A DNA stretch of 64,000 bases from Macrostomum lignano (GCA_002269645.1 NIVC01000930.1:62001-126000); one strand, 5' to 3'; counted from the first letter of the stretch, positions 34,806 through 64,000 are shown. Program-made: numbers and translations. The notes: generated from the sequence alone by a model not told the origin.

Positions 34806-37800
34806 TCACACGGGACCGGCCCTGGCCAGCTCCCCCGCCCGCCTCGGGCCGCACAGAGGAGCCACCGAGTGCCAATCGGTGGCGCTGTCAACCAGAATGG
34901 CGCAGGCGGGGGCGGCAGGCGCGGCGTCGGCGAGAGCCAGGCGGCAGAGCTCCTCAAAGAAGGCCGGGTGAGTCGGGGGCCCGTAGAACAGCAGGTTGTG
35001 GATGCCTCTCAGCCGCTGCCGGTGGTAGAAATGGTAGCGCTCAGAGTAGAGTAGGATTCGAACCTGGCCTTCGCGAAACAGGCCTTGGTAGCTGCAGAGA
35101 GCAGGTCGGGGTTGACTACTCTTTACTAATATTGTTTGGAGTCGAATTAAACAATTTTAAGAGAAAATCTCACCTAAAGACTTTCAAATCTCATTCTAGA
35201 GACTTTCAAATCTCATTCTAGAGACTTTCAAATTTCACCCCATATATTTTTAAATCTCACCCCATATATTTACAAATCTCACCCAGAGACTTTCAAATCT
35301 CACCCGATAGATTTTCAAATCTCACCCGATAGATTTTCAAATCTCACCCGATAGATTTTCAAATCTCACCCTATAATATATTTTCAAATCTCACCCTATA
35401 ATATACTTTTAAATCTCACCCCATATATCGAATATTTTAAAATCTCATCCAAAGACTTTCAAATCTCATTCTAGAGACTTTCAAATCTAATTCTAGAGAC
35501 TTTCAAATCTCACCCTATAACAGATTTTCAAATCTCATCCTAGAGACTTTAGAAACCCCATATATTCTTAAATCTCACCTAGAGACTTTCAAATCTCACA
35601 CAGAGACTTTCGAATCTCACCCTATAGATTCTAGAATCTCACTCTATAACAAATTTTCAAATCTCACCCAAAGATTTATAAATCTCACCCCAAGATCAAG
35701 TAATCCCAAATTATGTGAGAATCTTAAGCTGTTTGGCATCCTTATTGATTATAAATCCTTAATCCTGAAAAATCTCAAATTACTTTAATAAAAATGCCAG
35801 ATTAAAATCCCTCTTAATAAAAAACTCAAAAATTCTTAAAATTCCCAACCCGAAAAATTCAGACCTCACTTTTAGATAAAAACATCTTTACTCTTAAGGC
35901 AGAAAAAGAACACTTCTAAATGAAAATATCCATCCTGCTAAAAATCTCGCCCTCAACATTTAAAATCTAATCCCTAGATCCCTAGATAATCCCTAGAAAA
36001 ATCACTCAAAATCAACACCTGATCTTACCCTGAGGTTTGAAATCTCACACTAAGATTTGATATCTTTCCTTGAGATTTGAAATCTCACCCTGAGATTTGA
36101 ATCCCACACTTAGATTTGAAATATCACATTGAGATTTGCAATCCCTCCTTGAGATTTGTAATCTCACCCTGAAATTTGAAATCTCACCTTGAGATTTAAA
36201 TCCCACACTTAGATTTGAAATATCTCATTGAGATTTGCAATCTTTCCCTGAGATTTGTTATCTCACCCTGAGATTTAAAATATCTCCTTGGGATTTGCAA
36301 TCTCACCCTGAGATTTGTAATCTCACCCCTGAGATTTGTAATCTCACCCTGAGATTTGTAATCTCACCCCTGAGATTTGAAATATCTTCATTCAAGATTG
36401 AAATCTCAACCTCTATCTAGCCTGCCGGACACTGGAAAAGCATTCACCCTCATTCCTTCCCCAGCCCGAACCTGGCAGCCTTATTCGCGGGCGTGTACTC
36501 GCTGATCGCGCAAAAGTCCAAGCTCTCCTTGCGCAGCTCCGCCCTCAGGTCCGCCCAGTCCAGGTAGCTGGGCGCGTAAACCAGCACCCGGATCAGGCGC
36601 TGGCCCTCGCGTAGCCATGGCAACAGGCGCCGACGGAAAGCGGCCAGACGAGCCGTCGAAGCCTCGGCCGGGCCGGACGAAGCGAACTGGACGAACCGGA
36701 CGGCCAGGGGCCCGGCGCCGACGGACGCCAGCGGGCCGCCAAGCAGACCGGCTTCGCCGTACAGACCGGCGTAGTGCGGCCTCAGAGCCAGCTTGCCGCG
36801 CCAGTTGCGCATGTGGCCGCCAAACAGGCCGCTCAGCTCTGGGAAGCGGACGCCAGACAGGCAGACTGTCTGCCGGTACAGGCTGGCTCGGCCTTCCAGG
36901 TACCTGAGAGGTGGTACGTGGGATTAGTTAGTTAGGCCAGTCTGTCTGTCTTAGTGTCTATCAGATCAGGTGAGGTGAGGTCAGGTGAGGTGAGGTCAGG
37001 TGAGGTCAGGTGAGGTCAGGTGAGGTCAGGTGAGGTCAGGTGAGGTCAGGTGAGGTCAGGTGAAGTCAGTCAGTCAGTCAGTCAGTCAGTCAGTCAGTCA
37101 GTCAGTCAGTCAGTCAGTCAGTCAGTCAGTCAGTCAGTCAGTCAGTCAGTCAGTCAGTCAGTCAGTCAGTCAGTCAGTCAGTCAGTCAGTCAGTCAGTCA
37201 GTCAGTCAGTCAGTCAGTCAGTCAGTCAGTCAGTCAGTCAGTCAGTCAGTCAGTCAGTCAGTCAGTCAGTCAGTCAGTCAGTCAGTCAGTCAGTCAGTCA
37301 GTCAGTCAGTCAGTCAGTCAGTCAGTCAGTCAGTCAGTCAGTCAGTCAGTCAGTCAGTCAGTCAGTCAGTCAGTCAGTCAGTCAGTCAGTCAGTCAGTCA
37401 GTCAGTCAGTCAGTCAGTCAGTCAGTCAGTCAGTCAGTCAGTCAGTCAGTCAGTCAGCAAGCAAACGCACCAGAGCCGACACCGGAACAGATCAGCCTCG
37501 CCAGTGTCCTCCGGTATCCGGTTGGCAGCCTCAACAATGTCGAGCACTCGGCACCAGTTCTGAGCAGCAATCGAGTCGGCCTGATCGATGATCAGCAGCT
37601 CCAGAGAGCTCAGCAGGCGCGGCTGCTCAGCCACAATATCCGCCAGGCCCAGAGGCGAGGCAACAATAAGATCCGAAGCCAGAAACGGCGTGTACAACTT
37701 CAATGTCCGCTTGGCAACGGCGATACCCAATCGGAAATCGTCATCAGAGTTGGCGCCGAACAGTTCCTCAAAATCTGGCGGCTTCTTGCCGCGTCGCCTG

Positions 37801-38573
37801 TCCGAGTCTGATGAAGCCGAACTGCAGCGAAACTCGCGAAGGAACCGAGCCCGATGACTGACCAGAGCTCCGGCCGGCAGCAGGGAGATTAAAGTTTCCA
37901 CGGCTTTCAATGCCGACTCCCTGACTGGAAGCAGCAAGAGAACCCTGGGCCTGGCGAAGCCTTGATCGCGCAGACTCTCAGGATCCGCAGCTGATGATGA
38001 AGAGTTATTCCTAAGCACCAGACGCCGTGTCTGATACAGGTGGTTGAGCAGGTGCAGACAGTAGCACAGGCGGATCCTGTCGGCACTCTCTGGCCCAGGC
38101 CGCCGGTCGCACAGTGTCAAATCTCTGTAGCCAGTGAGCAGGCTCAGCAAACTGCTCCATCTGTCACCCAGGCCAGCCGCCGCCTCAGCTGCTGGCCTGA
38201 GAAAGCTGACAAAATCAGCTGACAAACTGTCAGAGTCGGAGGCTAGTCGGGTTTTCAGTTCGTCAAGACACCGGGGCAGCTTGTAGAAATAGGCCTGCTC
38301 GCCGACAAAGCCGGGCAGTTCAAGGCTGGCTGAGAGGCACTGGCCATCGCGCAGAGTGCTGGTCTCCGAGTCGGTGAGCACAGCAGATAAGTGCCTGTGA
38401 AAACTGCTATTGGCAGAGGAACTCTTTGCCGTTGAAGAGGACCGACTGTCTACAGGACGAGATCGTTTCGCTTTTGAAGCAGAAGTTTCGCTGCCGGTTT
38501 CGCTGTCGGTGTTGCTTTCGTCTTTGAGAGCCTCGGCTGGTCGCTTCGGCGGCAGCTTTGTCGAGGAGTTCGG
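34806..38573 (-). CDS. UTP25: U3 snoRNA-associated protein 25 (Def/DIEXF) homolog
   Basis: Exons 38573-37471, 36903-36472, 35091-34806, GT-AG, phases match. Motifs LRDQGFARPRVLLLLP, DLIVASPLGL, LLIIDQAD, LVYAPSYLDW, LLYSERYHFY. No ATG in exon 1. Confidence 0.92.
35180..36410. repeat. Degenerate 21-22 bp AAATCTCACC arrays in UTP25 intron 2
   Basis: Two arrays, ~35180-35700 and ~36030-36410. Confidence 0.85.
36965..37457. repeat. (TGAGGTCAGG)n then (CAGT)n filling UTP25 intron 1
   Basis: Direct reading. Confidence 0.98.
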
Positions 38574-38679
38574 CTGGGCGGCGGTGGCCAGGAAATATGA
38601 AAAATTATGTACTTTAGTAATGATAACTGCTGGGGTTAGAAACTGGGAGGGGTGGAAAGAGTGGGAGAAAGGAAGGGAA

Positions 38680-39375
38680 GGGGGGAGGAGGGAATGGACA
38701 GAGGATGAGAGGAGGGGAAGAGGGGAGATGGAAGAGAAGAGGGGAAGGAAAGGGAAGAGGGGAAGAGGGGAAGAGGGGAAGAGGGGAAGAAGGAAAGGGA
38801 AGAGGGGAAGAGGGACCCAGGAAGGTAATAAAGGAAGGGGAAGAGGGAAGGGGAAGGTAATAAAGGAAGGGGAAGAGGGAAGGGGGGAAGGTAATAAAGG
38901 AAGGGGAAGAGGGAAGGGGGGAAGGTAATAAAGGAAGGGGAAGAGGGACCCAGGAAGGTAATAAAGGAAGGGGAAGAGGGAAGGGAGGAAGGTAATAAAG
39001 GAAGGGGAAGAGGGAAGGGAGGAAGGTAATAAAGGAAGGGGAAGACGGAAGGGAGGAAGGTAATAAAGGAAGGGGAAGAGGGAAGGGAGGAAGGTAATAA
39101 AGGAAGGGGAAGAGGGAAGGCGGGAGGTAATAAAGGAAGGGGAAGAGGGAAGGGAGGAAGGTAATAAAGGAAGGGGAAGAGGGAAGGGAGGAAGGTAATA
39201 AAGGAAGGGGAAGAGGGAAGGGAGGAAGGTAATAAAGGAAGGGGAAGAGGGAAGGCGGGAGGTAATAAAGGAAGGGGATTAGGGAAGGGAGGAAGGTAAT
39301 AAAGGAAGGGGAGTAGGGAAGGGAGGAAGGTAATAAAGGAAGGGGAGTAGGGAAGGGAGGAAGGTAATAAAGGAA
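38680..39375. repeat. 34-bp purine-rich minisatellite between TCEANC2 and UTP25
   Basis: GGGAAGGGAGGAAGGTAATAAAGGAAGGGGAAGA, period 34. Confidence 0.95.
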
Positions 39376-39565
39376 GAGGAAATGTCCAGTTGAAAAATTG
39401 ACACAAATCCAGACAGCATAATGAAAAAAATGAAAGCAACCAAGTTCGTATTAAATTGTATTATTTGTATTGTATTTCAATTTAAATGCACTGCAATAAA
39501 CAGACAAATGATAAAAGTAACATTGGATTTCGGAGCGCAATATAATTAAAGCATTAGCAAACTTG

Positions 39566-40246
39566 TCAACCAGTCAGAGCAGCCAGAAGCCCCTTATAGT
39601 CGGCGTCAGCAGCAGTGGCAGCCGCCCGCAGGCTGGCATCCGACCTCAGTTTAGCCGTCAGCCGCCTGGCCGCTTGCCAATAATTATGACCAACTAAGCT
39701 GCGGTAATTAAAGAACAGCTGTCGCTCAATGCCGACAGCGGCTGGCGAGTCCTCCGAGCAGCTCAACGCAGCAGCCAGCAGCTGTCGGGTCCGCCTTCGC
39801 TGCTCTGTACAAGCGGCGTCGCAGGCCACGTCCAGCTGCTGACGGCTCTGAACTTCGATAAAATGAGCCAGCCAGGAGTCGCAGATGGCGCTAGCCGCCC
39901 TGGCAACTTCAGCATCCGGATGGTTGGTCAATCGTTTCACGTGAGCGCCAATCTTGGTGAGTTTGAGCAGCTCCCTGCTAGGCTGCTTGGCTGCTAGCTT
40001 ATTCAGAGTGTCCAGCAGCTGACCCGGGCTCCATCGCTCCGGAGCTCTCAGTACCTCCTTGTAGCGGTACAGGTCTTCCACCACGACAACGCCGCGCATG
40101 TCGGTGATGCGCACCTGCCGGCTGGAGCCCGAGGAGACGCCGAGTCCGCCGCCTGTGTCCGGCTGTCGCTTCAGAAAATTGTCGATTCGAATTTGACGCA
40201 GCCGGCCGTCGCCTTGCGGCCGTCTGGATGAAGCTCGGGGCGGAGA
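39566..40246 (-). CDS. TCEANC2: TFIIS N-terminal and central domain-containing protein 2 homolog
   Basis: VVVVEDL...PSRELLKLTKIGAHVKRLTNHPDAEVA...IERQLF...RRLTAKLR matches the remembered family pattern. Single coding exon; no ATG upstream of the conserved region. Confidence 0.85.
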   Translation of the reverse strand, partial: SPPRASSRRPQGDGRLRQIRIDNFLKRQPDTGGGLGVSSGSSRQVRITDMRGVVVVEDLYRYKEVLRAPERWSPGQLLDTLNKLAAKQPSRELLKLTKIGAHVKRLTNHPDAEVARAASAICDSWLAHFIEVQSRQQLDVACDAACTEQRRRTRQLLAAALSCSEDSPAAVGIERQLFFNYRSLVGHNYWQAARRLTAKLRSDASLRAAATAADADYKGLLAALTG

Positions 40247-40529
40247 CTGGGGGGATGTGGGAGTTTTGTTTATAGTAGCAATCGACAATTAAAAAAAAAT
40301 TTAAGGACATCTTTAAGACGATTGGGACCTATAAATGGATCTATAAGACAGCCTACAGGATCTATAGAGATAGATAGATCCAAGAATCACTGTAGTATAA
40401 CAGGACGTAAAACTCAAGGATTGTGTAATTTTTAGGGGGCCGATTTTCTGGAAATACACTGCGGTGATAATAAAAATCATTTTTTATCTAAAAAATCAAG
40501 GATTGCATTTGATCTGGAGCTATTTATAA

Positions 40530-43500
40530 GACAGTAGAAATCTACAGAGATCTATAAGACAGTAGAAATCTACAGAGATCTATAAGACAGTAGAAATCTA
40601 CAGAGATCTATAAGACAGTAGAAATCTACAGAGATCTAGAAGACAGTAGAAATCTACAGCGATCTATAAGACAGTAGAAATCTAGAGATCTATAAGACAG
40701 TAGAAATCTACAGAGATCTAGAAGACAGTAGAAATCTAGAGATCTATAAGACAGTAGAAATCTACAGCGATCTATAAGACAGTAGAAATCTAGAGATCTA
40801 TAAGACAGTAGAAATCTACAGCGATCTATAAGACAGTAGAAATCTAGAGATCTATAAGACAGTAGAAATCTACAGAGATCTAGAAGACAGTAGAAATCTA
40901 CAGAGATCTAGAAGACAGTAGAAATCTACAGAGATCTATAAGACAGTAGAAATCTACAGAGATCTAGAAGACAGCATAAATCTACAGAGATCTATAAGAC
41001 AGTAGAAATCTACAGAGATCTATAAGACAGTAGAAATCTACAGAGATCTAGAAGACAGTAGAAATCTACAGAGATCTATAAGACAGTAGAAATCTACAGC
41101 GATCTATAAGACAGTAGAAATCTAGAGATCTATAAGACAGTAGAAATCTACAGAGATCTAGAAGACAGTAGAAATCTACAGAGATCTATAAGACAGTAGA
41201 AATCTACAGAGATCTAGAAGACAGTAGAAATCTACAGAGATCTATAAGACAGTAGAAATCTACAGAGATCTAGAAGACAGTAGAAATCTACAGAGATCTA
41301 TAAGACAGTAGAAATCTACAGAGATCTATAAGACAGTAGAAATCTACAGAGATCTACAAGACAGTAGAAATCTACAGAGATCTACAAGACAGTAGAAATC
41401 TACAGAGATCTAGAAGACAGCATAAATCTACAGAGATCTAGAAGACAGCATAAATCTACAGAGATCTATAAGACAGCATAAATCTACAGAGATCTATAAG
41501 ACAGCATAAATCTACAGAGATCTAAAAGACAGTAGAAATCTACAGAGATCTAGAAGACAGCATAAATCTACAGAGATCTATAAGACAGTAGAAATCTACA
41601 GAGATCTATAAGACAGTAGAAATCTACAGAGATCTATAAGACAGCATAAATCTACAGAGATCTATAAGACAGTAGAAATCTACAGAGATCTAAAAGACAG
41701 TAGAAATCTACAGAGATCTAGAAGACAGTAGAAATCTACAGAGATCTAGAAGACAGCATAAATCTACAGAGATCTACAAGACAGTAGAAATCTACAGAGA
41801 TCTAGAAGACAGTAGAAATCTACAGAGATCTAGAAGACAGTAGAAATCTACAGAGATCTATAAGACAGTAGAAATCTACAGAGATCTATAAGACAGCATA
41901 AATCTACAGAGATCTAAAAGACAGTAGAAATCTACAGAGATCTAGAAGACAGTAGAAATCTACAGAGATCTAGAAGACAGCATAAATCTACAGAGATCTA
42001 TAAGACAGTAGAAATCTACAGAGATCTATAAGACAGTAGAAATCTACAGAGATCTAGAAGACAGTAGAAATCTACAGCGATCTATAAGACAGTAGAAATC
42101 TAGAGATCTATAAGACAGTAGAAATCTACAGAGATCTAGAAGACAGTAGAAATCTAGAGATCTATAAGACAGTAGAAATCTACAGAGATCTAGAAGACAG
42201 TAGAAATCTACAGCGATCTATAAGACAGTAGAAATCTAGAGATCTATAAGACAGTAGAAATCTACAGAGATCTAGAAGACAGTAGAAATCTAGAGATCTA
42301 TAAGACAGTAGAAATCTACAGCGATCTATAAGACAGTAGAAATCTAGAGATCTATAAGACAGTAGAAATCTACAGCGATCTATAAGACAGTAGAAATCTA
42401 GAGATCTATAAGACAGTAGAAATCTACAGAGATCTAGAAGACAGTAGAAATCTACAGAGATCTAGAAGACAGTAGAAATCTACAGAGATCTATAAGACAG
42501 TAGAAATCTACAGAGATCTAGAAGACAGCATAAATCTACAGAGATCTATAAGACAGTAGAAATCTACAGAGATCTATAAGACAGTAGAAATCTACAGAGA
42601 TCTAGAAGACAGTAGAAATCTACAGAGATCTATAAGACAGTAGAAATCTACAGCGATCTATAAGACAGTAGAAATCTAGAGATCTATAAGACAGTAGAAA
42701 TCTACAGAGATCTAGAAGACAGTAGAAATCTACAGAGATCTATAAGACAGTAGAAATCTACAGAGATCTAGAAGACAGTAGAAATCTACAGAGATCTATA
42801 AGACAGTAGAAATCTACAGAGATCTAGAAGACAGTAGAAATCTACAGAGATCTATAAGACAGTAGAAATCTACAGAGATCTATAAGACAGTAGAAATCTA
42901 CAGAGATCTATAAGACAGTAGAAATCTACAGAGATCTACAAGACAGTAGAAATCTACAGAGATCTAGAAGACAGCATAAATCTACAGAGATCTAGAAGAC
43001 AGCATAAATCTACAGAGATCTATAAGACAGCATAAATCTACAGAGATCTATAAGACAGCATAAATCTACAGAGATCTAAAAGACAGTAGAAATCTACAGA
43101 GATCTAGAAGACAGCATAAATCTACAGAGATCTATAAGACAGTAGAAATCTACAGAGATCTATAAGACAGTAGAAATCTACAGAGATCTATAAGACAGCA
43201 TAAATCTACAGAGATCTATAAGACAGTAGAAATCTACAGAGATCTAAAAGACAGTAGAAATCTACAGAGATCTAGAAGACAGTAGAAATCTACAGAGATC
43301 TAGAAGACAGCATAAATCTACAGAGATCTACAAGACAGTAGAAATCTACAGAGATCTAGAAGACAGTAGAAATCTACAGAGATCTAGAAGACAGTAGAAA
43401 TCTACAGAGATCTATAAGACAGTAGAAATCTACAGAGATCTATAAGACAGCATAAATCTACAGAGATCTAAAAGACAGTAGAAATCTACAGAGATCTAGA

Positions 43501-43640
43501 AGACAGTAGAAATCTACAGAGATCTAGAAGACAGCATAAATCTACAGAGATCTAGAAGACAGTAGAAATCTACAGAGATCTAGAAGACAGTAGAAATCTA
43601 CAGAGATCTAGAAGACAGCATAAATCTACAGAGATTTATA
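40530..43640. repeat. 28-bp satellite AGACAGTAGAAATCTACAGAGATCTATA with 1554-bp higher-order duplication
   Basis: Variant CATAAA marks recur at 40975/42529 and 41421/42975. Confidence 0.97.
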
Positions 43641-44957
43641 GGACAGCCTTCATTCCTAGAGCAGCTTTACTGGCAGTCAGAATCGTCAAAGATAGCATTA
43701 AGCAAACAGGTCTGACCCATTTAGCTTAGCACAGTGAAGCCAGACGTGGCAGAAAAGCTATTTCCAGCATAAATACAAATTCAGCATCACCGAAGACTTA
43801 TCTCAAATTTGAGAAATTTCGCCTAGAATCCCTCTCACCCCACCCATCTCAAATGGCGAATATATAGCTAGCAAAAGGTCTAAAGTACTTCTGAATAGAA
43901 ACTCGGCTATAAAGCAAACAGGCAGAGAGCCCCGGGCCTGTCACACACAGAAACAGCTCGAGCGGATTAACGATAGGCCGACCCTTCCAGAGAGCAACTG
44001 AGCGTGAGGCGGTGTACGATGGCGCGCACACAACAGCCATGGCATAAACGAAATGAGCCTGGATAGGGGGATCAGGGATCAGGGAGAAACGAGAGCGGCC
44101 CTGTTGTAGCAATTCGCAACTAATAGAAAATATGCTCAGCCATCGCCATTGAAGCCATCTCTATAGTGTAGCATGCCCTGAGCATTGTAGCTCTCATTAT
44201 CTCAAATGACATTTCACGAGCCGGAGTTAGAGACAAAAAATAATTAAGATAGATCTTTACAAATAAATGGTTTAACAGTAAGATAGAAGCGAAGTCATTT
44301 CTCAATTTATTTACTTAATAATAAATTTTTTATAAAGAGTTACTATGCCAATTAACTATTCTAAAAAAAGATTAAATTCTTTTACCTAAAAAATTATTTT
44401 ATTAACTTTCAGAAAAATTTACGCAATTTTGTAGAACGTGAATTCATTTAAAATTGCCTGACAGGAATTCCCATCCCCCGAAAATTTCCTACAAAATGGA
44501 ATTCCCAAACGTCGGTAACTGCCACTGATTCACCTTGACGGGAATTCCCCAGGATAGCCCGGTATGGGAAATCCCCACAATTTCTACGACGGGAATTCCC
44601 AATAATTTTTCACAACGGGAATTCCTCAAATTTTCCACGAAAAGAATTCCCCAGGATTTCCGAGAACGGGAATTCCCTAGGGGTTTCCCACGACGGTAAT
44701 TTTCCAGGATTTTCCAGTACGGAAATTCCCTAGGATTTCCTACGGAAGGAATTCCTCAGGATTTCCAACAAAAGGGAATTCCTCAGGATTTCCCAAGAAG
44801 GGAATTTCTCAGGATTTCCCACGAAGGGAATTCCCCAGATATCTTAGAAAAACCGGAAGTAGAGTTGAATTTTTACGTCTGGCGGAAACTATATAAGTGA
44901 TCATATATAAGCAATAAAATTATGGTGAAGTTCAATGAATTCGCTATCGAAGGCTTC

Positions 44958-47900
44958 TCAACCGACCACCTCGCCCCGGTTGTCGCCGACATTGTAAGCC
45001 ACCCAGTCGGCGGCAATGGGGGCGGACAGCAGCTTCGGGCTCAGATCGAACGCGTCCACCACCGCCCTGGTGTCGATGGTGCTGCACAGCCGCCTGGCAG
45101 CCTTGGAGACGGCGGCGCCCTGCTCAGGCGAGATGAGTCCGGTGCTCATAATTGAGCCGAGATGACGCTCGACGCAGTTCAACAGATACAGATGCCGGAT
45201 GCTGGACAGCAGTTCGCGACCGGGCGAGCCTTCGGGCAAGTCGGCGACAGCCTTGGCCACCGCCTCGGCGGTGAGTCTGTAGCCGTACATCTTGGCGGCT
45301 TCTTGCACCTCGTCGCTGAGTTCGCACATCCAGGCTTGAAACAAACCGGAGGCGCCAGCTTTGCCTAGCGCGCCAACTAGGGCGCCATTTAGGCGCGTCT
45401 CGTGCGACGCTAGGACGGCTTCGAGGAAGGCCGGATCGTTCACTGCGCTGGCGTCCTTAGCAACTGAAGCCGGCTTGGTTGGCTTGAATAGCGACAGGCG
45501 CTCTTTGGCCACTTTCTGCATCAGCACCGAGTTGTCGCCCTCGGCGGTGAGGGCGGCGTGGGCGTTGCCGATGTAGGTGCCGAACCTTGACAAAGTGGGA
45601 GAAATTTGATAAATTTGATATTTGCGGGACGTCCAGGATGAGAATTCTCACAGATTTCACACGGATTCCCGGGTATGGGATTCCCCACGGATTCCCAGCT
45701 ACGGGATTCTCCACGGATTCCCAGTTACGGAATTCCCAACGGATTATTAGCTACTGGATTCCTCACGGATTTCCGGCAACAGGATTCCTCACGGATTTCC
45801 GGCTACGAGATTCCTCACGGATTTCCGGCTACGGGATTCCTCACGGATTTCCGGCTACGGGATTCCCCACGGACTCCCGGCTACGGGATTCCCAACGGAT
45901 TCCTGGCTACGAGATTCCTCACGGATTTCCGGCAACAGGATTCCCCATGGATTTCCGGCTACGGGATTCTCCACGGACTCCCGGCTACGGGATTCCCCAC
46001 GGATTTCCGGCTACGGGATTCCCCATGGATTCCCGCTATGGGATTCTCCACGTATTTCCGACTATGGAATTCCCCACCTATTTCCGACTATGGGATTCCC
46101 CACCTATTTCCGACTATGGGATTCCCCACCTATTTCCGACTATGGGATTCCCCACCTATTTCCGACTATAGGATTCCCCACCTATTTCCGACTATGGGAT
46201 TCCCCACCTATTTCCGACTATGGGATTCCCCACATATTTCCGACTATGGGATTCCCCACATATTTCCGACTATGGGATTCCCCACCTATTTCCGACTATG
46301 GGATTCCCCTTGTATTTGTTCCCCTTGAAAAAATGGTAACTCCTTGTATTTACCATGGAATTCCCGCCAAACAAGACAAGAGAAAGCATTAGAGTATAAT
46401 TGTAAAAAATTATTTCTTATAAATATTACAGATATTACAGATATGTTTCTTAGAAAATATTTAAACTGCAGCCGTATTCCTCACCTATTGCAGGCCAGGT
46501 AGCCCTGGCCGCCGCATCGCTCCCTAGTGATGCTGGCTACCCGCTCCATATGCCAGCCGCAGAGCGGTTTGATAGCGCAGCACATGGTCACCAGGTTGGC
46601 GTGCTCTGCCTCAGTCTTGGCCGTAGCAAACGCGTCCTTGACCTGGTCCAGGCCGATATTCAGAGCCACGGTGTCGGCCAGCAGCGGAACCAGGGCCCGC
46701 TTCTGCAGCTCGTAGGTGAGAATTGGAGTGTCGGATTTGCCAGTCGGCCCGACAGTCAGGCGGGTGGAGGCGTAGCGCAGAGCGATGGACAGACAGGCCT
46801 TGACGCCACCCATGCACATGCTGGCAATGCAGATTCGGCCGGAGAGCAGCTGGTCGGCCACGGTCAGGAAGCGAGCTCGGTTGCTCTTGATTGACGTGGT
46901 GAAATTGCCCTGCTCGTCAATGTCGCTGTATCTGAATTTGGGCGGGGAGAGGGGAGGGAGACTCAGGCTGAAGGCAGAGGGAATGGCAAATGAATGACAA
47001 AGGAAATGGAAGATGCAATGGCAGATGGAATGGCAGATGGAATGGCAGATGGAATGGCAGATGGAATGGCAAAGGAAATGGCAGGGGGAATTTCATATGG
47101 AATGGCAGATGGAATGGCAAAGGAAATGGCAGGGGGAATTTCAGATGGAATGCCAGATGGAATGGCAAAGGAAATGGCAAGGGGAATTTCAGATGGAATG
47201 GCAGATGGAATGGCAAAGGAAATGGCAGGGGGAATTTCAGATGGAATGCCAGATGGAATGGCAAAGGAAATGGCAGGGGGAATTTCAGATGGAATGGCAG
47301 ATGTAATGGCAAAGGAAATGGCAGGGGGAATTTCAGATGGAATGCCAGATGGAATGGCAAAGGAAATGGCAGGGGGAATTTCAGATGGAATGCCAGATGG
47401 AATGGCAAAGGAAATGGCAGGGGGAATGGCAAAGAAAATGGCAGATGGAATGCCAGGTGGAATAGCAAAGGAAATGGCAGGGGAAATGGCAAAGAAAATG
47501 GCAGATGGAATGCCAGGTGGAATGGCAAAGGAAATGGCAGGGGGAATTTCATATGGAATGGCAGATAGAATGGTAAAGGAAATGGCAGGGGGAATTTCAT
47601 ATGGAATGCCAGATGGAATGGCAAAGGAAATGGCAGGGGGAATTTCAGATGGAATGCAGATGGAATGGCAAAGGAAATGGCAGGGGGAATTTCAGATGGA
47701 ATGCAGATGTAATGGCAAAGGAAATGGCAGGGGGAATTTCAGATGGAATGCCAGATGGAATGGCAAAGGAAATGGCAGGGGGAATTTCAGATGGAATGCC
47801 AGATGGAATGGCAAAGGAAATGGCAGGGGAATGGCAAAGAAAATGGCAGATGGAATGCCAGGTGGAATAGCAAAGGAAATGGCAGGGGAAATGGCAAAGA

Positions 47901-50900
47901 AAATGGCAGATGGAATGCCAGGTGGAATGGCAAAGGAAATGGCAGGGGGAATTTCATATGGAATGGCAGATAGAATGGTAAAGGAAATGGCAGGGGGAAT
48001 TTCATATGGAATGCCAGATGGAATGGCAAAGGAAATGGCAGGGGGAATTTCAGATGGAATGCCAGATGGAATGGCAAAGGAAATGGCAGGGGGAATGGCA
48101 AAGAAAATGGCAGATGGAATGGCAGATGGAATGGGAGATGGAATGGCAAAGGAAATGGCAGATGGAATGGCAAAGAAAATGGCAGATGGAATGGCAGATG
48201 GAATGACAAAGGAAATGGCAGGGGAATTTTAGATGGAATTTTAGATGGAATGGCAAAGAAAATGGCAGATGGAATGGCAAAGAAAATGGCAGATGGAATG
48301 GCAAAGGAAATGGCAGGGGGAATTTCATATGGAATGGCAGATGGAATGGCAAAGGAAATGGCAGGGGGAATTTCAGATGGAATGCCAGATGGAATGGCAA
48401 AGGAAATGGCAGGGGGAATTTCAGATGGAATGGCAGATGTAATGGCAAAGGAAATGGCAGGGGGAATTTCAGATGGAATGCCAGATGGAATGGCAAAGGA
48501 AATGGCAGGGGGAATTTCAGATGGAATGCCAGATGGAATGGCAAAGGAAATGGCAGGGGGAATGGCAAAGAAAATGGCAGATGGAATGCCAGGTGGAATA
48601 GCAAAGGAAATGGCAGGGGAAATGGCAAAGAAAATGGCAGATGGAATGCCAGGTGGAATGGCAAAGGAAATGGCAGGGGGAATTTCATATGGAATGGCAG
48701 ATAGAATGGTAAAGGAAATGGCAGGGGGAATTTCAGATGGAATGCCAGATGGAATGGCAAAGAAAATGGCAGGGGGAATTTCAGATGGAATGCCAGATGG
48801 AATGGCAAAGGAAATGGCAGGGGGAATTTCAGATGGAATGGCAGATGTAATGGCAAAGGAAATGGCAGGGGGAATTTCAGATGGAATGCCAGATGGAATG
48901 GCAAAGGAAATGGCAGGGGGAATGGCGAAGAAAATGGCAGATGGAATGCCAGGTGGAATAGCAAAGGAAATGGCAGGGGAAATGGCAAAGAAAATGGCAG
49001 ATGGAATGCCAGGTGGAATGGCAAAGGAAATGGCAGGGGGAATTTCATATGGAATGGCAGATAGAATGGTAAAGGAAATGGCAGGGGGAATTTCAGATGG
49101 AATGCCAGATGGAATGGCAAAGGAAATGGCAGGGGGAATTTCAGATGGAATGCCAGATGGAATGGCAAAGGAAATGGCAGGGGGAATGGCAAAGAAAATG
49201 GCAGATGGAATGGCAGATGGAATGGGAGATGGAATGGCAAAGGAAATGGCAGATGGAATGGCAAAGAAAATGGCAGATGGAATGGCAGATGGAATGACAA
49301 AGGAAATGGCAGGGGAATTTTAGATGGAATTTTAGATGGAATGGCAAAGAAAATGGCAGATGGAATGGCAAAGAAAATGGCAGATGGAATGGCAAAGGAA
49401 ATGGCAGGGGGAATTTCATATGGAATGGCAGATGGAATGGCAAAGGAAATGGCAGGGGGAATTTCAGATGGAATGCCAGATGGAATGGCAAAGGAAATGG
49501 CAGGGGGAATTTCAGATGGAATGCCAGATGGAATGGCAAAGGAAATGGCAGGGGGAATGGCGAAGAAAATGGCAGATGGAATGCCAGGTGGAATAGCAAA
49601 GGAAATGGCAGGGGAAATGGCAAAGAAAATGGCAGATGGAATGCCAGGTGGAATGGCAAAGGAAATGGCAGGGGGAATTTCAGATGGAATGGCAGATGGA
49701 ATGGCAAAGGAAATGGCAGATGGAATGGCAGATGGAATAGCAAAGAAAATGGCAGGGGGAATTTCAGATGGAATGGCAAAGGAAATTGCAGATGGAATGG
49801 CAAAGGGAATGGCAGATAGAATGGCAAAGGAAATGGCAGATGGAATGGCAAAGGGAATGGCAGATAGAATGGCAAAGGAAATGGCAGATGGAATGGCAGA
49901 TAGAATGGCAAAGGAAATGGCAGATGGAATGGCAGATAGAATGGCAAAGGAAATGGCAGGGGGAATTTCAGATGGAATGCCAGATGGAATGGCAAAGGAA
50001 ATGGCAGGGGGAATGGCGAAGAAAATGGCAGATGGAATGCCAGGTGGAATAGCAAAGGAAATGGCAGGGGAAATGGCAAAGAAAATGGCAGATGGAATGC
50101 CAGGTGGAATGGCAAAGGAAATGGCAGGGGGAATTTCAGATGGAATGGCAGATGGAATGGCAAAGGAAATGGCAGATGGAATGGCAGATGGAATAGCAAA
50201 GAAAATGGCAGGGGGAATTTCAGATGGAATGGCAAAGGAAATTGCAGATGGAATGGCAAAGGGAATGGCAGATAGAATGGCAAAGGAAATGGCAGATGGA
50301 ATGGCAAAGGGAATGGCAGATAGAATGGCAAAGGAAATGGCAGATGGAATGGCAGATAGAATGGCAAAGGAAATGGCAGATGGAATGGCAGATAGAATGG
50401 CAAAGGAAATGGCAGATGGAATGCCAGATAGAATGGCAAAGGAAATGGCAGATGGAATGGCAGATAGAATGGCAAAGGAAATGGCAGATAGAATAGCAAA
50501 GGAAATGGCAGTTGAAATGGCACACAGAAATCAAATGCCAACCTATTAAGCAGGTTGTCCCTCGGCACCCGGATAGAGTCGAAGGACAGCTTGGCATTGT
50601 CCACCCCGTTCAGGCCCATCCTGACTCCCATATCGTGAATGTGAACGCCCGGCATCGGTTGAAGGTCATCGTCTCGAATCCTAGCCAGAATGCCGTGCAC
50701 TCCGCACTGCTGGCCGTTGACGCGCAGCTGGGCGAACACAACGCAGTGCTTGGCGTGCAGAGCACCATTGGTGATCCAGTACTTCTGCGACAGCGGAGTC
50801 GGGCTGTTGATAACGAATTCACCAGCCTTGGCATCGTACTCGGCCGTGGTCTCCATCTCCACGGCGTTGTTGCCGTAGCCCAGCTCCGTCAGGCCGAAGC

Positions 50901-51184
50901 AGCCGACGTCGTCAAGAGTGTCAATGCCGGCTAGCAGGCGGCTGTGATGCCGCTCGGTGCCCAGCTTCAGCACTGTGCCGCCGAACAGGTTGAACTGGAC
51001 CTGCGGGCGGTCGGGCGGGGCAGGGCGGCGGATGTAACTAACAGACAGGAAGACAGACAGACAGACAGACAGACAGATAGACAGGCAGACAGACAGACAG
51101 ACAGATAGACAGGCAGACAGACAGACAGACAGACACACAGACAGACAGACACACAGACAGACAGACGGAGAGACACACAGACAC

Positions 51185-51243
<59 letters not shown>

Positions 51244-51256
51244 CACAGACAGACAC

Positions 51257-51302
<46 letters not shown>

Positions 51303-51320
51303 GGAGAGACACACAGACAC

Positions 51321-51375
<55 letters not shown>

Positions 51376-51388
51376 CAAAGACAGACAC

Positions 51389-51435
<47 letters not shown>

Positions 51436-51437
51436 GG

Positions 51438-51474
<37 letters not shown>

Positions 51475-51534
51475 GGACAGACACACAGACAGACAGACAG
51501 GCAGACAGACAGACAGACAGACAGACAGACAGGC

Positions 51535-51567
<33 letters not shown>

Positions 51568-51975
51568 CTAAGACAGACAGACAGACAGACGGATACACAG
51601 AGCACCAACCGTCATCTTGGTGGACATGGCCGGATCGGTGATGGCTGACAGCTCGTGGGCGGCAAAGATCCTGTAGGGATTATTCTGAAAGTCCAGCACG
51701 GAGATGAACCCGGCCTGGCAGACTTTCTTCAGCCGCTGGTAGGACAGCTCGCGGTCCTCCTCCAGGCTGACATTGTAGCGCGGCTGGAACAGCGGGTCCG
51801 CCGCCATGAAGGCCTTCATCTGGTCGCGCATCTCGTGATTGTCGTGGTCCAGAATTCGCTTCAGCTCGGCGGCGGCCGCGGCCGGAGCGTCGGCTCCGGA
51901 GGCGACACCCCGACAGTGATGATGAGGCAATTGCAGGAGGCTGCGACTGATCCGATTGCTGAGTAGCCGATGCAT
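44958..51975 (-). CDS. Acyl-CoA oxidase, 632 aa
   Basis: Exons 51975-51610, 51000-50543, 46931-46485, 45585-44958 (1899 nt, phases match). Motifs [55 protein letters not shown]. Subfamily not assigned. Confidence 0.93.
45660..46310. repeat. 26-bp minisatellites in ACOX intron 3
   Basis: CACGGATTTCCGGCTACGGGATTCCT grading to CACCTATTTCCGACTATGGGATTCCC. Confidence 0.92.
46990..50515. repeat. ATGGCAGATGGA-derived satellite filling ACOX intron 2
   Basis: 12-bp-based units with block duplications of 1091 bp (48205/49296) and 456 bp (49786/50242). Confidence 0.97.
51040..51600. repeat. (GACA)n filling ACOX intron 1
   Basis: Direct reading. Confidence 0.98.
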
Positions 51976-52059
51976 TGCTGCTTGATGCCGGCTTTTTTAA
52001 AGCTGAGGAACATTTAGACAAGCGGACAGTAGGGGAGAAATATCCTTAGCGTGTCAGGA

Positions 52060-52640
52060 TCTGGGATGCAGGCCCAGCAACTGAGGATCCGAGAGGCTGG
52101 CCCAGCAGCTGGGGATCCGAGAGGCTGGCCCAGCAGCTGGGGATCTGAGAGGCTGGTCCAGCAACTGAGGATCTGAGAGGCTGGCCCAGCAACTGAGGAT
52201 CTGAGAGGCTGGCCCAGCAACTGGGGATCTGGGAGGCTGGTGGCCCAGCAACTGAGGATCTGGGAGGCTGGCCCAGCAACTGGGGATCCGAGAGGCTGGC
52301 CCAGCAGCTGGGGATCTGAGAGGCTGGTCCAGCAACTGAGGATCTGGGAGGCTGGTCCAGCAACTGAGGATCTGGGAGGCTGGTGGCCCAGCAACTGAGG
52401 ATCTGGGAGGCTGGCCCAGCAACTGAGGATCTGGGAGGCTGGTGGCCCAGCAACTGAGGATCTGGGAGGCTGGCCCAGCAACTGAGGATCTGGGAGGCTG
52501 GTGGCCCAGAAACTGAGGATCTAGGAGGCTGGCCTAGCAACTGAGGATCTGGGAGGCTGGCCCAGCAACTGAGGATCTGGGAGGCTGGCTCAGCAGCTGG
52601 GGATCTTGGAGGCTGGCTCAGCAACTGAGGATCTGGGAGG
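52060..52640. repeat. 28-bp minisatellite upstream of ACOX
   Basis: GATCTGGGAGGCTGGCCCAGCAACTGAG. Confidence 0.95.
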
Positions 52641-53031: not shown

Positions 53032-56000
53032 TCACTCCACTCTGCTGTTGGCCTGCTGCTTCGCCCACTGCATTCTCCGCCCGGCCGAGTCACATCCGGA
53101 CACGGACGAGCCGTTGCCATTGTTTCCTAGCAATCGGAGTCTGGCCGCCTCATCTTCGGCCTTATGCAACGGATCGAGCATTTGAAGCCGAGTAAGGAGG
53201 CTGGATAGCTGCATCGGGGCCTGGCTTGAGTGAACCTGGATCCAGGGGGGTGCGTTTAGGAAAGCAAACTGAAACTGATCTCGCCAATACTGAAAATGTG
53301 GCAGCCTTTCCGTCTCTCACTTCACATTCTTACCCTGGTTCCTTCCCTCTTTTTCCTCTTCCGCTTTACCCCCCACTTCCGCTCTCTACCCCTCACTTCC
53401 GCTCTCTACCCCCCACTTCCGCTCTCTACCCCTCACTTCCGCTCTCCACCCCTCACTTCCGCTCTCTAACCCTCGCTTCCACTCTCTACTCCTCACTTCC
53501 GCTCTCTACTCCTCACTTCCGCTCTCTAACCCTCGCTTCCGCTCTAGACCCCTCACTTCGACCCCTCAATTCCACTCTCTACCCCTCACTTCCGCTCTCT
53601 ACCCCTCAATTCCGCTCTTTACCCCTTACTTCCGCTCTCTACTCCTCACTTCCGCTCTCTAACCCTCAGTTCCGCTCTCAAACCCTCACTCCCGCTCTCT
53701 ACCCCTCACTTTCGCTCTCTACCCCTCACTTCCATTCTCTACTCCTCACTTTCGCTCTCTACCCCTCACTTCCGCTCTCTACCCCTCACTTCCATTCTCT
53801 ACCCCTCACTTCCATTCTCTACTCCTCACTTCCGCTCTCTACTCCTCACTTCCGCTCTCTACCCCTCAATTCCGCTCTCTACTCCTCAATTCCGCTCTCT
53901 ACCCCTTACTTCCGCTCTCTACCCCTCACTTCCGCTCTCTACCCCTCACTTCCGCTCTCTACCCCTCAATTCCGCTCTCTACCCCTCACTTCCGCTCTCT
54001 ACCCCTCACTTCCGCTCTCTACCCCTCACTTCCGCTCTCTACCCCTCAATTCCGCTCTCTACCCCTCACTTCCGCTCTCTACCCCTCACTTCCATTCTCT
54101 ACTCCTCACTTCCGTTCTCGACCCCTTACTTCCGCTCTCTACTCCTCAATTCCGCTCTCTAACCCTCAGTTCCGCTCTCTAACCCTCACTCCCGCTCTCT
54201 ACTCCGAATTTACTCTTCCCTTCCCTACCCTCTCATCCTCTCTCTACCTCTCATCCTCCTTTCTGCCCTTTCTCCTCTTTCCTCTTGTTTCCTCTTTGCT
54301 CATCTTCCTTGCTATTTCCAGCATGCCTACCTTAGCCCATCTTCTCCTGGGCTCCAAATCTCCAAACTGTCGATAATTAGCCAATGTCTCGGCAACCTCG
54401 GCGTCTAGAGAGTTGCCACCAATAGCCGTGAGATTTCTCAGCTCGGCGTGGCAGACAACCAGCAGCCAGAGAGGCGAGCTGGCCAACAGGCCCGCACTGC
54501 GGCTGCCGACAATCACTGGCACAAGGCAGCGCAGTTGAGTCAGACGAGAATTGCACTGCCGTTCAATCAGGCAGCGGCATAGATGGGCAACCCATTCGTT
54601 TCGATCGAATATGGCCACCGGCTCGTCTACGGGATAGTCAGAGCCTGCCAGAGACACGCGTGAGCATTTGTATTGATGAATGCTGTGCCTACCAGTCTTA
54701 TTGAATGTGTCTACCAATCGGAATTCGTGTCTGCAAGTATTTATATTGTTCTGACTGTTTTCTCACTCTCTTCGAAACAGAGCAGAGCACCTTGCCAGTT
54801 CTTTTTGAGTGTCTGCTATAGTCTTGTTGAGCATCTCTTACATACATGCGCAACACCCGGCCGACCCGAGAAAATACAGACGTAGTACTAATTAGATGAC
54901 GAGGCATTTAGCCTTAATAAGACAGTTATAGTTACTCCTGTCATTTACCCAAAATTGCGTTAATTTTTGCTTTAGGATTCCTTTCACAGGTAAGTCGCAT
55001 TTTTGGTCAAAAAGTAAGTCGCGCAGCCAGTGTAAATCAGGGGGGGGGCGTTGCTCATGTATGATCTCTCAGTCAGTTTCTGAGTATCTGCAAGTCTTAC
55101 TAACCTTACTTGCCAGCCCTATTAAGTGTCCATTAGAATTACTAATTTATCTTTAATTGTCTGTCAGTCTTAAGAAACCAAGCCGAAACTATTTTGTTCT
55201 ATAGCAACTCTTCATCGAGACCCTCTTTGTCACTGTTCCCCATTTACCCAATTCATAAGCTTTTGACAGTTTCTACCGTACCCAAGCTCCCGGCTCTAAC
55301 CTTACCGAACTCTAAGTCATTTCTGTTTGCTCTTGTATTCTATTTGCATCTTAAAATTCTACATGCAAATCGTCCCAAAGTGCTCCGTTCCAAAACAGCG
55401 TGCTAGATTGTGTTAACTGAATTTTTTGCCGTCAAACTTCGTCCAAGAAATCTAGCTACTAGTCCAAGAAAGTTCTAGACATCCATGGCTCGGTTTAGCG
55501 GGTATGGTCGTCCCTCTATGCCCCGGTCCTTGCGCTGAGCTCCCTCATCTACTTAGTAACGACCCTCTCTAATTGGTCTGCCAACATACCACCCCTCTCA
55601 ATGCACCTCTTAACATTTCAGCCTGTTTTCTACATTGAAAAATGTCGTTTCAACACTTTCAACACAAATTAGGAATGTTGTTTCACAGGTTGGATTGGCC
55701 GCCTTAGTTAAGGAGTCCCTCACAAGTCTCACAGCCAGTCAAGCGACTCTACAACTTAGCCAAAGCTTTCACTATTTGGCTACAACAATTGGCCATGCGA
55801 CCTCCTATGCCGAATTGCTCAATCCTCTGGGACCGCCGCCCACTCCGCAGCCACCAGACCGCTTTGTGAACTATAGGAGACAAATGCTTGTGCCCGGCCA
55901 GGACCAGCCGCGTCCACGACGGCTCATCTTGCCCATGAACTACGCATCGACAAGCACATACATCCAGTCTGCCAGTCATTCTGAGAAGTGGCATCAACTG

Positions 56001-59000: not shown

Positions 59001-59362
59001 CAAGCCTCGGGAAAAGGTGAGTTAGAGAAAATAATTAAATATTGGGGTCCAGGGTCCAAGCAAGCCATCAATGAATTAATAAGTGTCTAGCCCGTCCTAT
59101 TGAAAACATTGAAAGTTCAACTGACATGTGCGAATATCTGTGCAAACCAACCTTGCCCTCCACTCAGAAAATTAGAAAACCTTGCCTGTCCGTCTGTCCT
59201 CTGTCGGTCTGTCTGTTTGTCTGTCTCAGTGTCTGTCTACTGTCTGTCTGTCTGTCCTTCTGTCTTTCGGTTTGTCTGTCGCTCTGTCTGCCTGTCCTTC
59301 TGTCTGTCTGTCTGTCTGTCCTTCTGTCTGTCTGTCTGCCTGTCCTTCTGTCTGCCTGTCCT

Positions 59363-59409
<47 letters not shown>

Positions 59410-59434
59410 GCCTGTCCTTCTGTCTGCCTGTCCT

Positions 59435-59493
<59 letters not shown>

Positions 59494-63787: not shown

Positions 63788-64000
63788 CTGCGTAGTGCGT
63801 TTGTTGATTGAAAGGAGAGGATATACAAACGAGCAAGAGACTTAGTGTTTTTGTTTTCTAAACATTTAATACTTTTCTCCGAGGAAGAACAGATTGATAT
63901 GCAGACGTTACAACCTAGAGCATCCTATTCGGAGCCATGGACAAAGAATAATTGACCAAGAAACTAGATTTTAATTACCGCAACACACCTGACAGTGATC

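Follow-up and report, generated by a model that had tools for sequence, protein, structure and literature searches.

A spliced-leader AUG as the probable start codon of two neighbouring genes in Macrostomum lignano

Where does translation begin when a gene carries no ATG ahead of its conserved N-terminal residues? Two adjacent minus-strand genes of the flatworm Macrostomum lignano raise this question, one encoding UTP25 and the other a protein that we call TCEANC2-like. They lie in a 64,000-nt stretch of contig NIVC01000930.1 (assembly GCA_002269645.1, Mlig_3_7), hereafter the window, in which base w corresponds to contig base 62000 + w; we set this offset because the contig's own copy of the locus (L003), read on the reverse strand, agrees with window 29566-50243 at every base. 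An initial annotation of the window had proposed that both genes open at in-frame 3' splice sites of an operon-like cluster and receive their AUG from a trans-spliced leader. Its observation is largely right and its interpretation right in kind, and the analysis below points to a different junction for UTP25 and to a probable trace of the leader in the assembly itself.

The region is present in three genomic copies, namely L003 (the window), L001 (NIVC01000460.1) and L002 (NIVC01003105.1); redundant copies are a known feature of M. lignano, which is a hidden polyploid (PMC5730564). The suffixes g1/g2/g3 in the GenBank names number these copies. UTP25 follows the TCEANC2-like gene in three of the three copies, and a gene for acyl-CoA oxidase (ACOX) lies upstream of the TCEANC2-like gene in L001 and L003. 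All three gene identities had been proposed in the initial annotation and are borne out by domain matches.

Coding exons that open at acceptor sites

The TCEANC2-like gene is the clear case. Its reading frame, a single coding exon, matches GenBank proteins of M. lignano exactly, and the product carries a TFIIS N-terminal helical bundle (Pfam PF08711). A profile of the family, whose 156 homologues are mostly 200-216 aa long, matched the TFIIS N-terminal domain (41-119) and central domain (121-205) of solved structures. The name TCEANC2 is supplied by no named match and rests on this architecture: both TFIIS domains, N-terminal and central, in a protein of about 210 aa that lacks a zinc ribbon.

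All the elements described earlier for this gene are present: the acceptor CCCCAG/TCT (slashes mark splice junctions) with the exon starting at 40246, an in-frame stop upstream (TAA at 40291-40289, 15 codons from the junction), and no ATG before the conserved region. Indeed, no ATG in any frame occurs in the exon before 40099 (codon 50). Comparison with orthologues extended this observation. Twelve aligned orthologues start with M(D/E)(K/R)(F/Y), one of them after its own 13-residue N-terminal extension, and those beginning MDKFV, aligned to I21-D22, are 205-216 aa long. Their initiator Met aligns to Ile21 of the M. lignano protein, encoded by ATC (40186-40184), from which the motif continues as IDNFLKR, so that conserved residues lie upstream of the sole genomic in-frame ATG. 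The ancestral ATG thus appears to have become ATC, and the leader AUG would take over 21 codons upstream.

The annotated 5' ends fall at the same place. Three GenBank proteins, one per genomic copy, are all flagged partial and lack Met; they start with SPPRASS (right after the AG), PPRASS (+3 nt) and SRRPQG (+18 nt), and the first base of protein P0002 is exactly the one after the AG. The N-terminus MSPPRASS predicted in the initial annotation agrees directly with the first of these. GC content rises across the acceptor from 0.35 to 0.67, the acceptor is in phase 0, and the frame is open from 40246 to the conserved domain. A leader joined here would place its AUG, in phase 0, as the first AUG on the mRNA, and the mature protein is predicted to be M+SPPRASS..., 227 aa.

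UTP25 was identified by its NTPase-like domain (Pfam PF22916, E = 5.6e-66) and C-terminal domain (PF06862). Its three exons reproduce the GenBank protein of the window copy, PAA74660.1, exactly; this entry is partial, 611 aa long, and begins ATAAQPNSS. Exon 1 contains no in-frame ATG, nor do the 230 in-frame codons upstream of it, and the first Met comes only long after residue 63, where a conserved SxFxRH motif is found. The window protein matches its flatworm and fungal orthologues in length and aligns with them from end to end; by this alignment, UTP25 is not missing an N-terminal exon. The earlier statement that exon 1 has no Met thus holds for the window but is limited to that copy, because an ATG directly precedes the start in both sister copies as assembled.

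The position of the UTP25 junction had to be revised. The initial annotation opened the exon at GCCCAG/CCG (38573) and predicted the N-terminus MPNSS. This AG is present, in frame and conserved, but it lies inside the annotated exon: PAA74660.1 begins at 38588, which puts the annotated 5' end 15 nt upstream of 38573. Of the sister proteins, that of L002 also begins at 38588 and that of L001 3 nt after it. GC content steps from 0.33 to 0.72 at 38588, more sharply than at 38573 (0.43 to 0.62), and the junction at 38588 is likewise in phase 0 with the frame open to the conserved domain. The mature N-terminus is therefore predicted, from the annotated protein, as M+ATAAQPNSS..., 612 aa, instead of MPNSS.

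Two further in-frame AG sites on the minus strand flank the annotated UTP25 start, at 38642 and 38573, the former (tccacccctcccag/TTT) with a good pyrimidine tract. Both could be alternative or fallback trans-splice sites, GCCCAG/ at 38573 possibly as a minor one. At position -15 relative to the UTP25 junction (38603, minus strand), the T of the window corresponds to a G in both L001 and L002; this G makes an out-of-frame ATG (ataATGttt) in the presumed outron of the sister copies.

The leader that this reading calls for is known. M. lignano has a single 35-nt spliced leader, CGGTCTCTTACTGCGAAGACTCAATTTATTGCATG, which ends in ATG, as the initial annotation had presupposed, and about 30% of its genes are trans-spliced (PMC8629364). 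A probable role as a start codon has been ascribed to the terminal ATG of the Macrostomum leader (PMC10468722), and every flatworm spliced leader reported to date ends in AUG. For the Mlig_3_7 annotation, the leader was trimmed from RNA-seq reads, the remainder was mapped and transcripts were cut at the resulting peaks (PMC5730564). Because genes were cut in this way, annotated 5' ends are indirect evidence of leader junctions, and the Met-less 'partial' proteins start 0-18 nt (TCEANC2-like) and 0-3 nt (UTP25) from the junctions proposed here. The copies also become less divergent on crossing each junction: 6.5% drops to 1.5% at one and 3.1% to 1.5% at the other.

With a leader that ends in AUG, the exon starts at 40246 and 38588 are both in phase, and no in-frame AUG stands upstream of the conserved residues in either gene of the window. 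Two phase-0 acceptors would arise by chance with a probability of 1/9, and the absence of an ATG upstream of conserved N-terminal residues is a stronger argument than the shared phase. The leader sequence, searched with up to 3 mismatches, was not found in the window, which holds no leader gene, and an Rfam scan of the whole window gave no match at gathering thresholds. In the protein collection, whose clusters consist of GenBank and UniRef members only, no product begins with MSPPRASS or MATAAQ.

The codon in front of UTP25

In the assembled window the UTP25 junction is preceded by CTG, and at the same place L001 and L002 have ATG; neither codon ends in AG. A third version comes from the older ML2 assembly: UniProt A0A1I8IQ85 (P0043) is identical to the L001 protein at 610 of 610 residues and is extended to YFQ/ATAAQ. 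Because it reads YFQ/ATAAQ where L001 has ATG, the ML2 codon encodes Gln and is CAA or CAG. We took CAG as the original codon because it is closer than CAA to both CTG and ATG. The original sequence would then be a canonical acceptor, TTTCCAG/GCC, and if the ML2 Gln is CAG, TTCCAG/GCC would fit the published trans-splice acceptor motif [T/C]TNCAG (PMC8629364).

The history of the two assemblies offers an explanation for the difference. ML2 and Mlig_3_7 rest on the same PacBio data; for Mlig_3_7 a polishing step was added in which Pilon used RNA-seq reads aligned with STAR (PMC5730564). The end of the leader, ...TATTGCATG, matches the putative original genomic sequence, TATTTCCAG, at 6 of 9 positions, so leader-bearing reads would be able to align across the UTP25 junction. 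Measured against CCAG as the original, position -2 (A to T) is changed in 3/3 copies, position -3 (C to A) in 2/3 and position -5 in 0/3; the changed bases are exactly those of the leader and fade with distance from the junction. Because the changes match the leader tail and fade in this manner, we consider that the true acceptor is probably CAG, and that CTG and ATG are imprints of the leader tail CATG left by RNA-seq polishing.

At one trans-splice acceptor, then, Mlig_3_7 probably contains bases that stem from the leader (CCAG turned into CCTG or CATG). If such imprinting were common, acceptor-motif statistics would be blurred, and a widely used assembly could contain spurious genomic ATGs or have lost AG sites. 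The published motif was seen at only 9551/21754 spliced-leader sites (PMC8629364). A search for further imprints, as GCATG or TTGCATG before open frames, gave counts below chance and no convincing case. [quoted passage not shown]

Taken together, we propose that the 35-nt leader (...TTGCATG) is trans-spliced to phase-0 acceptors at 40246 (TCEANC2-like) and 38588 (UTP25), that its terminal AUG would then initiate MSPPRASS... (227 aa) and MATAAQPNSS... (612 aa), and that the two mRNAs are most likely cut from one precursor RNA. The CTG at 38589-38591 and the sister ATG would be the mark of leader CATG on a true CCAG. To this reading as a whole, comprising trans-splicing, leader-AUG initiation, a common precursor for the pair and the polishing imprint, we assign a probability of about 0.68, judged from sequence and published annotation.

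Several points weigh against it. As assembled, the window has no AG at 38589-38590, and the in-frame genomic ATG of the sister copies, if real, would be an ordinary start codon. What ML2 shows is the amino acid Gln, from which we infer CAG over CAA. The TCEANC2-like acceptor CCCCAG departs from [T/C]TNCAG. The annotated boundaries count as indirect evidence, and reads that map to several places are common to the three nearly identical copies. As to the precursor, the spacer between ACOX and the TCEANC2-like gene (1288 nt after repeat adjustment) exceeds the 1-kb limit used for operons in this species and has room for a promoter in about 650 nt of unique sequence, and about 60% of trans-spliced M. 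lignano genes lie outside operons (PMC8629364).

Spacing, neighbouring genes and rival explanations

Four genes follow one another closely on the minus strand in the order myosin, ACOX, TCEANC2-like and UTP25, and the 10 kb that follow UTP25 are without a called gene. We defined satellites as Tandem Repeats Finder repeats and the repeat-adjusted spacer as the total minus the satellite. In the published rule, two features make an operon of adjacent same-strand genes, trans-splicing of the downstream gene and a repeat-adjusted spacer of less than 1 kb; about 15% of M. lignano genes are in operons by that rule, with spacers inflated by repeats (PMC8629364). The TCEANC2-like/UTP25 pair agrees with this rule in spacing (307 nt) and orientation, with trans-splicing taken from the annotation, and its origin from one polycistronic precursor is plausible on these grounds. 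The gap between the two genes, given earlier as about 1 kb and mostly satellite, is 977 nt with 670 nt of satellite; it measures 604 and 1028 nt in the sister copies, the variation being in satellite copy number alone. The inclusion of ACOX and the TCEANC2-like gene in one precursor appears borderline from the spacing, and the myosin/ACOX spacer (444 nt) is within the 1-kb limit, with leader use at ACOX a candidate only.

A chimeric ML2 model, P0039 (UniProt A0A1I8JCQ3), spans window 40246-34806 and joins the N-terminus of the TCEANC2-like protein (SPPRASS...) to the C-terminus of UTP25. Such a fusion may reflect dicistronic RNA or may have arisen when two predictions were merged, and it is a weak hint of read-through.

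A rival account accepts trans-splicing and the leader AUG but gives each gene its own promoter, the tight spacing then being no sign of an operon. We regard this as possible but doubtful. It draws support from the low published share of trans-spliced M. lignano genes that are placed in operons, about 40% (PMC8629364), and from the spacer between ACOX and the TCEANC2-like gene, which is 4.7 kb long (1288 nt without satellites) with about 650 nt of unique sequence at 43650-44300. It fits poorly with the spacer ahead of UTP25, which has just 307 unique nt and is shorter than the published 1-kb limit, with the adjacency of the two genes in three copies, and with P0039, where both genes are fused, though a merge by the prediction could produce this as well.

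The remaining alternatives concern the start codons themselves. The ATG of the sister copies, which read TTTCATGGCC with the ATG in frame, might be the normal start of UTP25 and the window CTG the mark of an allele that has lost its start codon and is silent, initiates at CUG or resorts to the acceptors at 38573 or 38642. In favour of this reading are the redundant copies of a hidden polyploid and the in-frame fallback AG sites, yet the annotated transcripts of the sister copies begin just after the ATG and are partial, which fits a trimmed leader and not a 5' untranslated region; moreover, ML2 reads Gln there for the same, otherwise 610/610 identical copy, and both changed bases match the leader tail. 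We consider this explanation unlikely. It is also rather unlikely that CAG, CTG and ATG are real alleles or homeologues and not polishing errors. Were they real, the gene family would have been caught switching between a leader-donated start (CAG acceptor) and a genomic ATG at the same position, with CTG as an intermediate having neither acceptor nor start codon. Trans-splicing of UTP25 at GCCCAG/CCG (38573), giving MPNSSTK..., seems improbable. This AG is in frame and conserved in all copies, and in the window it is the first intact in-frame AG after the altered site, but all three annotated proteins include the five residues upstream of it (four in L001), and the sequence before it is G/C-rich and coding-like, has no pyrimidine tract and misfits [T/C]TNCAG. 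Since annotated starts, upstream sequence and the sharper GC step favour 38588, 38573 was rejected as the main junction. Least probable by far is an ATG for the TCEANC2-like gene from a cis-spliced 24-nt mini-exon (ATG at 40310, intron 40286-40247, which is 40 nt long and not 39 nt as first given) or a start at Met50. The mini-exon is in frame with GT and AG in place, and a product starting at Met50 would still retain the TFIIS N-terminal domain. However, the donor ATT/GTCGAT is far from the species consensus GT[G/A]AG (PMC8629364), the mini-exon differs between copies at 4 of 24 nt compared with 1.5% in the coding exon, and it appears in no annotated transcript of any copy; a start at Met50 would lose the conserved DxF(L/V)xR N-terminal motif and would lie behind the leader AUG on the mRNA. 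Both were rejected on account of the poor donor, the divergence, the missing transcript and the lost motif.

ACOX differs from the two downstream genes in having its own ATG. Its product combines dehydrogenase-type middle and C-terminal domains with ACOX C-terminal domains, as expected of an acyl-CoA oxidase. The candidate exon map (51975-51610, 51000-50543, 46931-46485 and 45585-44958) was picked by eye from 7 enumerated four-exon maps of 632 aa, and the introns are filled with satellites. The acceptor TTCCTCAG/ reported at 52003, 27 nt ahead of the ACOX ATG, is present; a leader AUG joined at 52002 would open only AUG-CUU-UAA. The myosin-like stop lies 1029 nt upstream of this candidate acceptor on the same strand. 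In L001 a myosin gene likewise ends just upstream of ACOX, and L001:900-984 is the end of a gene called Myosin_head with a product of 1113 aa. In the window the myosin-like gene (53032-64000, minus strand) reaches or passes the right end, and its exons are divergent; Pfam found a weak IQ motif only (61754-62098) among the open reading frames (ORFs) of this region, and a homology search with the ORF 63106-63828 gave no match. The cluster may start at the myosin gene, upstream of the interval given in the initial annotation.

Satellites (38712-39381, 40525-43646, 45653-46309, 46973-50522, 51041-51601 and 52056-52640) fill the introns and spacers of the cluster and appear pyrimidine-rich on the transcribed (minus) strand, and from 38 to 52 kb both the GC skew and the AT skew of the plus strand are strongly positive. 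On the sense strand, the consensus of the 34-nt satellite unit ahead of UTP25 contains neither AG nor GT. The spacer that separates ACOX from the TCEANC2-like gene has, between its two satellite blocks, about 650 nt of unique, partly GC-rich sequence (43650-44300). A promoter may lie here, or else the ACOX 3' end, with AATAAA at about 44400 and 44315. The stretch contains an 87-codon ORF (43849-44112) that is called in no copy; no gene is called anywhere in this spacer in any copy.

Table 1. Features of the myosin-ACOX-TCEANC2-like-UTP25 region, in window coordinates; slashes mark splice junctions
Feature	Position	Strand	Details
UTP25 exon 3	34806..35091	-	stop codon 34806-34808; exact reproduction of PAA74660.1
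UTP25 exon 2	36472..36903	-	exact reproduction of PAA74660.1
UTP25 exon 1 as annotated	37471..38588	-	starts ATAAQPNSS; exact reproduction of PAA74660.1
Acceptor GCCCAG/ of the initial annotation (exon start 38573)	38574..38579	-	in frame, conserved, inside annotated exon
Codon before annotated UTP25 5' end	38589..38591 (L001:11689-11691; L002:10806-10808)	-	CTG in window, ATG in L001 and L002
TCEANC2-like-to-UTP25 spacer	38589..39565	-	977 nt total, 670 satellite, 307 unique
C/T-rich satellite in TCEANC2-like-to-UTP25 spacer	38712-39381		670 nt
TCEANC2-like single coding exon	39566..40246	-	226 codons + stop; exact GenBank protein match
First ATG of any frame in TCEANC2-like exon	40097..40099	-	codon 50, in frame; downstream of conserved N-terminal motif
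ATC (Ile21) where orthologues carry initiator Met (MDKFV...)	40184..40186	-	orthologue alignment
TCEANC2-like candidate trans-splice acceptor CCCCCCAG/ (CCCCAG/TCT)	40247..40254	-	AG conserved in 3/3 copies
ACOX-to-TCEANC2-like spacer	40247..44957	-	4711 nt total, 3423 satellite, 1288 unique
Satellites in ACOX-to-TCEANC2-like spacer	40525-43646, 44538-44838
ACOX coding region	44958..51975	-	own ATG at 51975, 632 aa; Pfam matches; annotated product 632 aa
Candidate spliced-leader acceptor TTCCTCAG/ for ACOX (exon start 52002)	52003..52010	-	identical in L001
Myosin-to-ACOX spacer			1029 nt total, 585 satellite, 444 unique
28-nt satellite	52056..52640		most of myosin-to-ACOX spacer
Last coding exon of myosin-like gene	53032..53214	-	stop 53032-53034; ORF matches L001:900-984

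Relation to known systems

Operons of Caenorhabditis elegans offer a general parallel, in which SL2 trans-splicing frees downstream cistrons lying close behind the upstream 3' end, with a pyrimidine-rich spacer between them. The M. lignano locus resembles them in its proposed downstream cistrons and pyrimidine-rich spacer, and is unlike them in having one leader type without an SL1/SL2 split and spacers inflated by satellites to 0.6-4.7 kb. Nematode leaders are not known to supply a start codon, which the M. lignano leader is proposed to do.

The nearest precedent for such initiation is Schistosoma mansoni, for which Cheng et al. (2006), as cited in PMC9851317 and PMC12582326, reported an in-frame leader AUG for 28% of trans-spliced mRNAs and more than 40 cDNAs that require it. 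As described there, that type shares with our locus a leader that ends in AUG, an acceptor in phase 0 with the main frame, and the lack of a usable genomic AUG upstream of conserved residues. The present case differs in that it is a prediction and comes from a free-living macrostomid; in the TCEANC2-like gene, moreover, the ancestral ATG is visibly ATC, and the leader AUG would add a 20-residue extension before it. Two more flatworm genes would thus depend on a leader AUG, which would confirm the Schistosoma finding for a free-living macrostomid and opens no new question. The practical value is probably the larger point: GenBank proteins flagged 'partial' are likely complete except for a leader-supplied Met, and the reference assembly probably bears an imprint of the leader.

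With the spliced-leader trans-splicing and operons published for M. lignano (PMC5730564, PMC8629364) the locus shares the genome, the 35-nt leader, the arrangement on one strand, satellite-inflated spacers, 5' ends cut at leader-read peaks and, for the TCEANC2-like/UTP25 pair, a repeat-adjusted spacer under 1 kb. It departs from them in the spacer between ACOX and the TCEANC2-like gene, which is too long, and in a UTP25 acceptor that is not AG in the assembly. Neither paper treats the locus itself or any gene dependent on a leader AUG. Since trans-splicing and operons are already documented in the species, we regard the locus as a further instance of a known mechanism.

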